The position numbers were made by a program, and so were the translations under genes. From Octopus sinensis (Eukaryota): a stretch of DNA of 64,000 nt. The stretch is from NCBI RefSeq assembly GCF_006345805.1, contig NC_043008.1:9238001-9302000 (forward strand), in the 5' to 3' direction. The notes under the pieces were generated by a model that was given only the letters and a program-made list of their open reading frames with translations, was not told the origin of the DNA and searched no databases. How positions within the stretch are numbered: the stretch's first letter is position 1; every line of letters begins with the position of its first letter. Shown in pieces: positions 6,201 through 27,200 of this stretch.

Positions 6201-9200
6201 TATATGTGTTTACATCATTCGGTGTATTTACACCTACTTGCCTACAGCAAGAAATTTTCCATGGCAAAATACAGTTAATGGCTTTCTTAACCATTTTGAT
6301 ACCAACCTGGCTGAAACCGGCTCTGGCTCCGAAGTACAAATGTCTTGCTTTCAAAAGATCTGAATGAAAATCTTCCACTAAATCTTAGTCACAATTTATG
6401 TTCCTAACACTAGCTTAATGATAACTAAGTTATTTTCCTAAATTCTTTGTTATATCTATATATATAAAACTGTAGTTGTGTGAGTGTCTGTCCCCTTCGA
6501 TTTAGATTCCTAACTACTCCCACATTTTGCGGTGCAGTTTAACCAAATTCGAGTATCTTATAGTCATGATTCATATCGAGCCCGTCTGAGTATTAGCGCG
6601 CGTCTACGATGAGTCTACGATTTAAAAAATAATTTAACATCATTTTTTAATTCCATTTTAATGCATAATTTTTGTGTGTCGATGGCGGTGGAGTTGGCGT
6701 CCATGGTCACACCTGCACCTGTTTGCTTCTCCCCACTCTTCCCTCCCTCGTGAAGCTGTGGGGAAGGGAGTGTAAGGAAATCAACGTCGTAAAGCGTTGT
6801 CAAGGAGACCAGCGTTCTTTTAGAACAACGACTTCATGGCTTGAAGACACCAAAACAGAAATGGCTAAGAAAGCCCGAATTGGCATCTATAAGGGAAGTA
6901 ACTCTCTAAAAATGCTTATATAGTTATTTCCCTTACAAACCCGAGCTACGCTGGGCGATACTGCTAGTTTAAAATTAATTGAAAGAAACACAGAGCATCT
7001 CAACAGAAATAGGATAATAAAAGGGTTAAAGTCACCATGCTATTTTTAACCCATTGATGTCAACATGGCTGAAACCACCTCTAACTCTGTATTACAAATG
7101 TCTTATTTTCAAAAGTTCTGAATTAAAATCTTCCACCAAACTTTAGTCACAATTTATGTTCCTAACACTAGCTGAATGATAACTAAGTTATTTTACTAAA
7201 TTCTTTATCATTTAAAATTAATTGAAAGAAACACAGAGCATCTCAAAATGAATACAGTAATGAAAGGGTTAAGAAGAAAAATAATCAGCAGAAATAATAG
7301 TCTAAATTTCCTTCAATCCACACCCTTCCAACTGCTTCTAATGTGCATCAGCCCAAATGTAGAGGTGTGTTTAACCCTTTCGATACCAACCTGGCTGAAA
7401 CCACCGCTGGCTCTGTAGTACATATGATTTGTTTTTATAAGTTTTGAATTAAAATCTTCCACCAAACCTTAGTCACAATTTATGTTCCTAACACTAACTT
7501 AATGATAACTAAGTTATTTTACTAAATTCTTTATCATTTAAAATTAATTGAAAGAAGCACAGAATATCTCAAAATGAATACAGTAACAAAAGCTACAGAA
7601 CAACACCAAGTTGAGATTTACCTGTTGATGGCCAAAAACTGGAAAATGATTTCATTACAAGAAAGTGGATCTCGATGGCTGGAGCTCATATCAGTGCCTA
7701 AATCAGCTCTCTCTGGGTTGACAACTTCTGCAGGGTCACCGTTTCGATCTAAGATTGGTGGAAAACCAGAATTGAACAGGAGATTGTAGGTACTCCGGGA
7801 CAAACTCTTGCAACTAAAATATCAATAAAAGAGAGAAAAAGAAATAGCTTTTAACTATTTTGTTTTTTATTTTGTAACATTTTTGTGATGGATTTCAACA
7901 ACATAAAAAGTTAAGATTTTTCAACCAAAACTTTTTGCTAGAAATTCATCGGAAGCTATTTATCCCTGCTTAAATGAGGATGTTCTTTGAGAACAAACTA
8001 TGCTGCAGTGGTTACCATGAGAAAATCTCCCACATTAGATTTTGGTGCAAAATGCAAACTTATTTATATCACTAATAGAGAGATAACTCCCCACCAACTG
8101 CAACACCAAGACCACCAGATCACGGGATTTTGACCTTCCTTAGTCTCGTAAGTGATAGACACTCAACCCCTAGAGATAGCAATCTCTAGCAGTTGAGCGT
8201 CCATCATTAACAAGGCCATGGAAAGTCAAATTCACATGGCCTCTGCACTGGAAATGGTAAAGATTTATCTCCCCATTAGTGATATAAACTAGAGATCATT
8301 TTCCATCAAAAGCCAATATGGGAGGTTTTCTCATGGTAACTACCACAGCATAGTTTGTTCTCAAAGAACATCTGCATTTACATGGGGAATAAATATTACC
8401 TCTCAGTATTAAAACAGCCTCCGTCACTAATAAATATCATTGGAAGCTGTGAAAATTTGATGTAAATGATGATATTGCAATTAAAATATTAAATTTATAA
8501 TTCTGAAAATAATAACCTAATAACATTTTGGTATTTCTTTTTCTAATATATCAGTTAATTTAATATGTTTATTAAGCCTTTGAATAACACCAAGAGAAAG
8601 TTAAAATATCACCAGTTCAGTAAATCATTGCAACCAGACAGCACCACCCTCCCTCGTCGTGTCCAGCTTTGAAGCAAGAAACCCTCTATGTGGTCAACTT
8701 GATTTGCTATAAATAATAGCAATCAAATGTAGTTCCAGATACAATACTAACCTGAAAGAAAAATAAGTAGGATGGTCACAGCTGGACTGTTTTTGATCAT
8801 AAGTTCACTCCATAAGGCCAGATCTGGAGTTGAACAACAATTACTTTGTTGTTTTTGGTATCATGCATTTTTTATCATTTTTTTTTTTCATTTAAAATTA
8901 ACCTAATTCCTTTTACTGTAGAAATTTTAACAATGCAAACTTTAGAAAACCATCCAACCTAATACATATACATATGTCTGTGTATATATATATATATATA
9001 TATATGTATATACATATATATATATGTGTGTATATATATATATATATATGTATATACATATATATATATATGTGTGTGTATATATATATATATATATATA
9101 TATATATATATTTCAACAATTGAGGGTAAAATTAATTAATTAATCAATTTCACCAAGTATTCAGTATGCAAAGGGACCATTTAAGGCGAATTCAAATTAT

Positions 9201-24200: not shown

Positions 24201-27200
24201 AGAAGAAGAATAACAATAATAATAATAATAATAATAATAATAATAATAATAATATAATAATGATGATGATAATAGAATAATAATAATAATGATAATAATA
24301 ATAATAATAATAATAATAATAATAATAATAATAATAATAATACTGGAACAGTATTCTGGATTACTTTTCATGATTTTTTGAGAGCAGTCAGGTTCATTTT
24401 TATAATAATAATAATAATAATAATAATAATAATAATAATAATAATAATGAATAATAATAATAATAATAATAATAATAATAATGAATAATAATAATAATAA
24501 TAATAATAATAATAATAATAACTGGCTAATAAGTCGACATTACAATATCAAAACTGCCGACAAGTGGTATAATCACCACCCTGAGGCTGTAACTGAAGGA
24601 GAAAATGTAACCATTCTGTGGGACTTTCCAGTACATACAGACCGAACCATCAAGGCCAATAAACCAGATATTGTTGTGAAAGACCAAAACAATAAAGTTT
24701 GCTTATTGATCGACATGAGCATCCCCTGTGATCATAATATCTCAGCGAAAGAGTTTGACAAGCTCAGAAAATATAAAGACCTACTCATTGAAATTGAGAA
24801 AATGTGGCATCTCAAGGCAGTTACAATACCAGTGATCATAGGAGCACTAGGAATGATCAAGAAGGGAACCGAAAATTATATGAGAATGATCCCTGGCTTA
24901 CCATCCCTGCAAGAAGTGCAAAAGATTGTCTTAACTGGTACATCACACGTATTGAGAAGAGCATTGTCGATGTGAGAACTGTTGCTGCTCATGTATTTTA
25001 ATTTAACTTAAAAAACAAAATAAAAAAAAAATGAACGAACTATTGAGTTTGGTTTAATGGCCTACCAATGTATACTATGAGTTTCTTTGCCCTAGGAGTC
25101 GGGAAGACACTCGGCAAGAAATGGAAGCAAATTTGAAAGAAAAAAAAGTAATAATAATAATAATAATAATAATAATAATGCTAAATAATAATAATAATAA
25201 TAATAATGATGATAAATAATAATAAAAATAATAATAACAATAATAATAATAATAATAATAATAATAATAATAACAATAATAATAATAATAATAATAATAA
25301 TAACAATAATAATAATAATAATATAATAATAATAACATAATAATAATAATAATAATAATAATAATAATAATAATAATAATAATAATAAAAATAATAACAA
25401 TAATAATAATAATAATAACATAATAATAATAATAATAAAAATAATAATAATAATAAAAATAATAATAAAAATAATAATAATAATAAAAATAATAACAATA
25501 ATAATAATAATAATAACAATAATAATAATAATAATAAAAATAATAATAATAATAAAAATAATAATAAAAATAATAATAATAATAAAAATAATAATAACAA
25601 TATAATAATAATAATAATAATAATAATAATAATAATAATAATGCTGTTGCTGTTATTCAACATTTAGTAGTTTCAGGCAAATTTCTACTGCATCACCTGA
25701 TATACCTGCATGTTGCTGGCAGCAGTAATGTTAACGATGGTGAAAAATCATAAAAGAAGAAAAGAGAAGGAAAATTCACAAATTCTCCAAATAAATTATT
25801 TTAGAAAAAATTATATTCTTACTTTCATGTGTTCTTCCATCATTGGTTCAGAGATAACATACTCCAAAGACAGAACCACAGAACAGTCAGGTGAGTCAAA
25901 AAGATCTTTAACATAGCATGGGGACCTCAGCACTAATCCAACAGCATTTGAAGACCTGAATTCCAGATTTAAAGGAAAAGCAAAAAAAGTCTGAATAATA
26001 ATCTCAGAGTGACACAGAGGACTGAACTGTGAGGATGTTAAATCATCTCCTCATATCACACAAAAATACATCATTGTTTAACCCTTTCGTTACTGTGTTT
26101 ATTTTGAGATGCTCCATGTTTCTTTCAATTAATTTTAAATCTAACAAAGGATTAAGTAAAATAACTTAGTTATCATTCAGCTAGTGTTAGGAACATAAAT
26201 TGTGACTAAAGTTTGGTGGAAGATTTTAATTCAGAACTTTTGAAAGCAAGACATTTGTACTACAGAACCAGAGGTGGTTTCATCCAGGTTGGTATTGAAA
26301 GGGTTAAGCACACCTCTACATTTGGGCTGATGCACATTAGAAGCAGTTGGAAGGGTGTGGATAGAAGGAAATTTAGGCTAGTGTTTCTGCTGATTATTTT
26401 TCTTCTTAACCCTTTCATTACTGTATTTATTTTGAGATGATCTGTGTTTCTTTCAATCTATTTTAAATCTAACAAAGGATTTAGTAAAATAACTTAGTTA
26501 TCATTAAGCTAGTGTTAGGAACATTAATTTAGTATAGTAGGGTCAGTTGGACACTGTCTATGAGAAAAACAGCACCATTATGCAATTCACTTTGCTAGAA
26601 ATTTGGAAATGACATGCTGTACTGCTTGGCATTTGTGCCAGAAGCTCCTATACGAACAGATGGTGAACACACAGAACAACCATTGGCTTGCAGTGTCCCC
26701 AAATACATCTACTGAGAGTGATAAAAATCGAACATCCACTCAGCAGCATGGTGTTTGGAGTGATCGCTAATGATGGCGACATTATTCTTTCGTTCATCTT
26801 CTCACACAGCCCTAAAACTCAACTCGGAGGCCTACAGCAAGTGCCTGGAGAAGGTAGTGTTGCCCTGGGTCAAGAGGGTGGTTATTGGAAGACCCTATAC
26901 CTGGCAACAAGATTTTGCACCATGCCACACAAGCAAGAGAACCCAGTCATGGCTGTCAGACAATCTCTGCGACCATATCACCCCTAACATCTGGTCACCT
27001 AACTCCCCAGACAGCAACCCCCTTGATCATTATGTGTGGGGTGCAGTTGAGCGAGAAACCAACAAATCTCTTTGTAACAAAACAGTAAAGATGAACTGAA
27101 GGCAAGGATTATGGCAGCATTCACCAACTTAAACAAGGAGACCATCCAGAAGAGTTGCAGGAGATTCTGAAGTCGTGTGGAGGTCACGGTTGAAGTCAAT

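Follow-up and report, generated by a model that had tools for sequence, protein, structure and literature searches.

Oppositely oriented composite MITE copies bracket exons 8-13 of NPHP4 in Octopus sinensis

Exons 8-13 of the NPHP4 (nephrocystin-4) gene of Octopus sinensis are bracketed by two oppositely oriented composite copies of a miniature inverted-repeat transposable element (MITE). The gene lies on the minus strand of the 64,000-nt stretch analyzed here (contig NC_043008.1 of RefSeq assembly GCF_006345805.1, positions 9,238,001 to 9,302,000), referred to below as the window; coordinates are counted from its first letter, and exons and MITE features are listed on the minus strand. An earlier note on this DNA had proposed that the pair gives rise to a six-exon circular RNA (circRNA) with an endless reading frame and/or to in-frame skipping of the six exons. 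We consider the pair to be, probably, a neutral transposon arrangement that yields at most a low-level circle. A circRNA from exons 8-13 is a legitimate prediction of a well-known kind, and it is not special in this gene.

The inverted pair and its repeat family

The downstream arm (arm A, intron 13), which was delimited by repeat search, blastn and alignment, occupies positions 7151-7592, and the upstream arm (arm B, intron 7), its reverse complement, occupies positions 26084-26529. A repeat search of the window returns the core of this inverted repeat as 323 gapless nt at 7210-7532 and 26146-26468 that are 92% complementary. By blastn, 7151-7592 aligns with 26529-26084 over 446 nt (90.1% identity, E=3e-174), and a MAFFT alignment of both arms contains 403 identical columns out of 449, with longest perfect runs of 54 and 44 nt; 12 of its 42 mismatch columns would be G-U pairs as RNA. 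The inverted repeat bracketing exons 8-13 is therefore real and lies almost to the base where the earlier note had placed it (7140-7590 and 26082-26530). The likeness of the arms that was reported there also stands, but the estimate of roughly 85% identity by eye was too low, the blastn figure being 90%.

Arm A is separated from the exon 13 donor by 29 nt of intron and arm B from the exon 8 acceptor by 128 nt, close to the ~30 and 126 nt given previously. The arms are ~18.5 kb apart, and the block of exons 8-13 spans ~18.3 kb. The likeness of the arms reflects common descent within one repeat family, not chance, and the inverted orientation of any two copies is a 1-in-2 event. An assembly artefact is an unlikely source of the pair, because the arms differ at ~10% of positions.

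The repeat units are ~225 nt long and bounded by TTAA, with the ends CCCTTTC... and ...GAAAGGG; TTAACCC...GGGTTAA is found at unit boundaries in both arms as well as in a trimer and a dimer located elsewhere in the gene. The terminal inverted repeats, CCCTTTCGATAC against the reverse complement CCCTTTCATTAC, comprise 7 perfect positions and match at 10 of 12 overall. Eight full units plus fragments are found in the window, with 80-89% mutual identity. None of the open reading frames of the window spans any MITE unit, and no autonomous element encoding a piggyBac transposase is present within the window. Taken alone, a unit folds no better than expected by chance (z=-0.05). An Rfam scan of the window returned no match, and consequently the arms carry no known structured RNA or tRNA-derived SINE (short interspersed nuclear element) signal. 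Judged by their sequence, these TTAA-flanked repeats are MITEs of the piggyBac type; the TTAA and CCC/GGG ends and the small, multicopy, non-coding units bear out the MITE nature that had been assigned to both arms.

Each arm is a composite. In arm A, a MITE unit at 7371-7592, which has lost its terminal GGGTTAA, is followed by TTAA, a 99-nt spacer (7271-7370), TTAA again, and a partial second unit. Arm B likewise consists of a unit, a spacer and a partial unit, and its proximal unit retains the GAAAGGGTTAA end at 26078-26088. The spacer copy in arm B (26309-26407, no strand assigned) is not MITE sequence, lies between two TTAA sites, and is identical at 95 of 99 positions to 7271-7370; the 64-kb window contains no further copy of this spacer beyond the two arms. 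Because both arms share the same layout and the private 99-nt spacer, the composite was duplicated as one block, which could have occurred by mobilization from its outer ends or by local inverted duplication.

The MITE units of the window fall into four clusters, in introns 13, 7, 6 and 1. The intron 13 cluster contains several units in one orientation, the intron 7 composite is in the opposite orientation, and the copies in introns 6 and 1 are oriented as in intron 7. Further pieces in intron 13 (6287-7266), in the same orientation as arm A, lie at 6287-6448, 6968-7029 and, as a full second unit, 7046-7270. The intron 6 trimer (28817-29533) is oriented as arm B and has its units joined by the 12-nt linker CAAATGATTAAT. 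The intron 1 dimer (46745-47218), also oriented as arm B, brackets exons 2-13 together with arm A.

The NPHP4 exon model and the predicted circle

The 362-residue translation of exons 8-13 is identical at 362 of 362 positions to XP_029643356.1 (Octopus sinensis nephrocystin-4-like isoform X2) and at 345 of 362 positions to XP_014785459.1 (O. bimaculoides). An exhaustive HMMER search with this translation matches a 1418-aa protein at 95% identity in a single uninterrupted stretch; by cluster look-up, this protein is named nephrocystin-4 of Octopus bimaculoides, and XP_029643356.1 belongs to the same cluster. Nephrocystin-4-like homologues also occur in Gigantopelta and Crassostrea. The precomputed Pfam list for the octopus protein P0001 comprises NPHP4_C2_2nd, NPHP4_C2_3rd, NPHP4_SK and four NPHP4 Ig domains. 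A live Pfam scan found no family for the exon peptides, the transposon open reading frames or the full-length proteins P0001 and P0054, a result that is contradicted by the precomputed hits and that we take as a limitation of the tool. Similarly, a word-index protein search with the 63-aa exon 13 peptide gave no candidate, though P0001 and P0003 contain this sequence or long exact matches to it; evidently, both are missing from the index. The protein match identifies the gene in the window as NPHP4 of O. sinensis, and the exon numbering 8-13 holds because 16 coding exons are located collinearly in the window by tblastn; the gene name and the numbering had both been given in the earlier note. 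The gene range in O. bimaculoides is 115 kb.

All of exons 8-13 have AG/GT splice sites. In gene order (a slash marks the exon boundary), exon 8 (25823-25955, 133 nt) has the acceptor ...ggaattcag/GTCTTC and the donor ATGAAA/gtaaga, and is followed by exon 9 (14787-15038, 252 nt, phase 0 to 0), exon 10 (13843-13931, 89 nt), exon 11 (12061-12373, 313 nt), which encodes a Q/P-rich low-complexity stretch and has a tandem acceptor, exon 12 (10652-10761, 110 nt) and exon 13 (7622-7813, 192 nt), with the donor CAACAG/gtaaat. Upstream lies exon 7 (28546-28697, 152 nt, phase 0 to 2), with its acceptor at 28697. Downstream lies exon 14 (4605-4710), whose acceptor is at 4710 and whose low end, ~4605, is an unrefined edge of the tblastn match. 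A model with an exon 8 of 134 nt and an exon 9 from 15064 (total 1098-1143 nt) was rejected on the AAA/gtaaga donor and on the O. sinensis protein, which reads EEHMK/FVRSMPW across this junction.

The tandem acceptor of exon 11, CAG/TAG, is of the NAGNAG type and lies at 12371-12376 on the minus strand. Isoform X2 of O. bimaculoides has one Ser fewer than isoform X1 precisely at the exon 11 junction, which fits the use of both acceptors.

Exons 8-13 add up to 363 codons (1089 nt) and begin and end in phase 2, figures identical to those reported earlier; with exon 7 included, the sum is 1241 nt, out of frame. The junction predicted for back-splicing of exon 13 to exon 8 is TTGGCCATCAACAG/GTCTTCAAATGCTG and reads ...ATC AAC AG/G TCT; the exon model thus reproduces the stop-free junction AAC AG/G TCT described before. 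The junction codon AGG would specify Arg (...LAINR), as does the linear join of exons 13 and 14, and trypsin would consequently cleave precisely there. Read around such a six-exon circle, the coding frame would meet no stop; it would contain 15 AUGs, several of them with G at +4 and a purine at -3. The frame is stop-free because the phases of the flanking introns are equal. The endless frame is therefore arithmetic and arises for any block with the same phase in its flanking introns; of the 28 contiguous blocks that can be drawn from exons 7-13, 12 would likewise yield a circular frame free of stops. The predicted back-splice of exon 13 to exon 7 is CATCAACAG/CTTGCTGTTCAC. The linear junctions read TCAAATGG/GTCTTCAAAT for exons 7 to 8 and CATCAACAG/AATATTTGACTC for exons 13 to 14. 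The predicted skipped junction of exon 7 to exon 14, TCAAATGG/AATATTTGACTC, stays in frame, since GG+A encodes Gly and is followed by IFDSQQ.

Pairing potential and competing readings

Cofolded in the pre-mRNA sense, the two arms have a predicted energy of -596 kcal/mol with 408 intermolecular pairs, and their net pairing gain is -434 kcal/mol compared with -4 to -17 kcal/mol for shuffled arms. According to this model, both arms could form a ~408 bp duplex in the pre-mRNA. Such a duplex would leave the canonical back-splice sites cag/GTCTTC and CAACAG/gtaaat free, as the arms begin 128 and 29 nt away from them. Arms that lie close to the splice sites in both introns represent a geometry experimentally shown to permit back-splicing; circularization requires repeat pairing but is not guaranteed by it, and not every inverted repeat supports it (PMC4201285).

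The exons 8-13 pair is one of many in this gene. In a self-comparison of the window, 175 inverted pairs reach 60 nt or more once low-complexity sequence is set aside, and at least 30 exon blocks of NPHP4 are bracketed by inverted repeats. Eleven of these blocks (exons 1-13, 1-14, 2-8, 3-8, 5-13, 5-14, 6-8, 7-13, 7-14, 8-13 and 9-10) have arms of 385-446 nt. The pair around exons 8-13 tops the gene at 601 bits, with the next three scoring 581, 552 and 545 bits. What distinguishes it is its nearness to splice sites, not its existence. Upstream, introns 6 and 1 offer arm A alternative partners. The trimer, which had already been pointed out as a competitor in the same orientation as arm B, ends ~119 nt ahead of the exon 7 acceptor (124 nt in the earlier note) and could, together with arm A, bracket exons 7-13 and the out-of-frame 1241-nt block. 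An unrelated ~430-nt repeat copy in intron 13 (5187-5621, no strand assigned) has inverted partners at 30398-30831 (intron 6, 435 nt, 88%), 37596-38422 and 62633-63057; these rival long duplexes would bracket exons 7-13, 5-13 and 1-13, respectively.

This copy belongs to a second abundant repeat family, found at 3136-3550, 5187-5621, 30398-30831, 37596-38422, 56422-57686 and 62633-63057. The family consists of ~430-nt arrays of ~190-240 nt units and is present in both orientations in introns 14, 13, 6, 4 and 1 as well as upstream of exon 1. Its duplexes nearly match the exons 8-13 pair in strength. Another inverted pair, from a different repeat family (13408-13817 and 16918-17318, 413 nt, 82%), brackets exons 9-10, which total 341 nt and are out of frame.

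The arm pair is best regarded as a by-product of MITE activity in a very repeat-rich gene rather than as a selected device. Under this neutral reading, intron 7 would usually be spliced out before RNA polymerase II has transcribed the ~18.3 kb that separate exon 8 from arm A. Where both arms do coexist, the long duplex would mainly serve as a substrate for ADAR. In at most a small fraction of transcripts, exon 13 would be back-spliced to exon 8; the product would be a 1089-nt circle of low abundance that is possibly accompanied by the matching mRNA in which exon 7 joins exon 14. There is some chance that this circle is detectable by PCR or deep total RNA sequencing, though we would sooner expect it to be missed. 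That it reaches at least 10% of the linear mRNA in some tissue is very unlikely, and that it is translated is least likely of all; rolling-circle translation is pure speculation at present. The prior for a circle is lowered because bracketed blocks and endless frames are common in this gene, because octopus circRNAs are scarce, because inverted repeats do not all support circularization and long or strong hairpins sometimes inhibit it, because pairing is disfavored by the ~18.5 kb between the arms, and because no annotated octopus protein in the retrieved cluster skips exons 8-13. In total RNA from 18 tissues of O. vulgaris, only 296 confident circRNAs were found, most of them in one tissue and at levels that were low overall, a scarcity which the authors put down to strong ADAR activity (PMC9699675). 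NPHP4 is not mentioned in the portion of the supplements of this survey that is drawn on here (PMC9699675).

Several observations weigh against the neutral reading. By its architecture alone, the locus makes a good candidate for a circRNA. The exons 8-13 pair is the highest scoring in the gene and by far the closest to splice sites, the flanking introns are long (2.6 and 2.9 kb), and neither arm has a competitor in its own intron, as the self-comparison of the window contains no inverted pair of at least 60 nt with both arms inside intron 7 or both inside intron 13. In addition, the spacer is 96% identical between the arms (95/99) compared with 87.5-91% for the MITE units next to it (196/224 in the unit nearest the exon), and a better-kept spacer is not an obvious outcome if one duplicated block decays neutrally.

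A stronger proposal is that arm pairing drives efficient exon 13-to-8 back-splicing and produces a biologically relevant 1089-nt circNPHP4 that may be translated endlessly from one of its 15 AUGs. Both the geometry and the pairing energy are suitable, neither arm is drawn away within its own intron, the frame runs through 363 codons with no stop, and endless-frame translation is documented for circEGFR, circNFIB and circTau. However, these translated circles measure 249-361 nt (PMC11724312), far from 1089 nt, no internal ribosome entry signal is known for the locus, and the frame property is common to 12 of 28 neighboring exon blocks. Longer or stronger hairpins and G-U pairs can inhibit circularization (PMC4201285), and the arms contain 12 G-U wobble positions. 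Given also the scarcity of octopus circRNAs, we regard this proposal as very improbable. A MITE-driven six-exon circle that is translated into concatenated nephrocystin-4 fragments, or an arm pair that acts as a regulated switch lowering full-length NPHP4 in ciliated tissue, is more improbable still.

Exon skipping and circle formation are linked processes. The duplex could loop out exons 8-13 and chiefly cause linear skipping, with exon 7 joined to exon 14 in an in-frame isoform that lacks 363 residues. In-frame skipping is tolerated by this gene, for exon 9 is missing from the O. bimaculoides proteins P0055 and P0056 (the latter being isoform X3). On the other hand, the retrieved cluster contains five annotated octopus NPHP4 proteins, not one of which lacks exons 8-13 as a block, and the block holds conserved segments such as exon 13, which is 100% identical between O. 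sinensis and O. bimaculoides. We consider skipping unlikely as the chief outcome.

A further proposal is that the pair is chiefly an intronic ADAR substrate, or another signal dependent on double-stranded RNA, that is hyper-edited and unwound with splicing unaffected. The predicted ~408 bp duplex, with its perfect runs of 54 and 44 bp, is well suited to this, and octopus editing occurs mostly in introns and 3' untranslated regions with hairpins. Octopus also ranked first among surveyed animals in hyper-editing and in double-stranded RNA potential, such editing clusters stemming from neighboring inverted repeats (PMC5625713). The arms, however, are ~18.5 kb apart, whereas inverted-repeat pairing declines with distance, editing of human inverted pairs dropping to a plateau of ~1% (PMC526178), and intron 7 may be gone before arm A exists. 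We consider an ADAR substrate as the main outcome fairly unlikely and rank it well below the neutral reading.

Other elements of the window lie in introns 7 and 8. In intron 7, just upstream of arm B in the sense of the gene, there is a Tc1/mariner transposase remnant, a plus-strand open reading frame of 109 aa at 26770-27099 that matches the catalytic domain of the Sleeping Beauty transposase (5cr4_A, E=1.1e-6). In intron 8, a plus-strand open reading frame of 164 aa at 24481-24975 has no match in the live Pfam scan and resembles the C-terminal part of a retrotransposon protein. Very large AT-rich trinucleotide microsatellite blocks of the ATT/AAT type, with GC down to 24-26%, occupy 21200-25640 of this intron and supply most of the 3372 inverted pairs from the repeat search of the window.

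Significance and comparison with known systems

If the circle is made, the locus would represent a clean invertebrate case of DNA-transposon insertions creating a back-splice substrate, and a tractable one for studying the antagonism of heavy ADAR activity and circRNAs. In cephalopods, a functional coding circRNA driven by a transposon would be the first to be described, whether as a translated circle or as a regulated switch. For now, the case has mostly negative value: exon-flanking inverted repeats and stop-free circular frames are commonplace in a repeat-dense octopus gene, and neither is remarkable by itself without RNA evidence.

Human NPHP4 is located on chromosome 1p36. A human "circNPHP4" (hsa_circ_0009135) has been described with the coordinates chr14:55168779-55169298, NPHP4 being placed at 14q22 (PMC8516978). 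These chromosome 14 coordinates are not at the NPHP4 locus; the circRNA may have been misattributed to this gene, and it is not used as a precedent here.

The closest parallel in humans is provided by the inverted Alu pairs of ZKSCAN1, HIPK3 and EPHB4 (Liang and Wilusz 2014, PMC4201285). As in octopus, the flanking introns carry oppositely oriented copies of one transposon family near the back-splice sites, and pairing brings the downstream donor beside the upstream acceptor. The octopus repeat differs in being a DNA-transposon MITE rather than a SINE, in its 446-nt composite arms, and in enclosing six exons over ~18.3 kb, with a circle that is only predicted.

In an invertebrate gene, Drosophila laccase2, inverted repeats derived from DNA transposons in the flanking introns reportedly support circularization. 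Regulation of the laccase2 circle by intronic repeats is described by Kramer et al. (2015, PMC4617980). The laccase2 circle is a proven, abundant, single-exon product, unlike the six-exon circle predicted in a circRNA-poor animal.

With the endless-frame (iORF) circRNAs circEGFR, circNFIB and circTau 12-10 (PMC11724312), the octopus circle would share a length that is a multiple of three and a stop-free host frame. The known cases are the short circles noted above and come with experimental evidence of translation, whereas the 1089-nt octopus circle is a prediction. A different likeness exists to ADAR-edited intronic inverted repeats (Athanasiadis 2004, PMC526178; Porath 2017, PMC5625713), which also combine inverted copies in one transcript into a long, near-perfect duplex. 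Such edited pairs are typically separated by a few hundred nt to a few kb, while the octopus arms are separated by ~18.5 kb and span exons.

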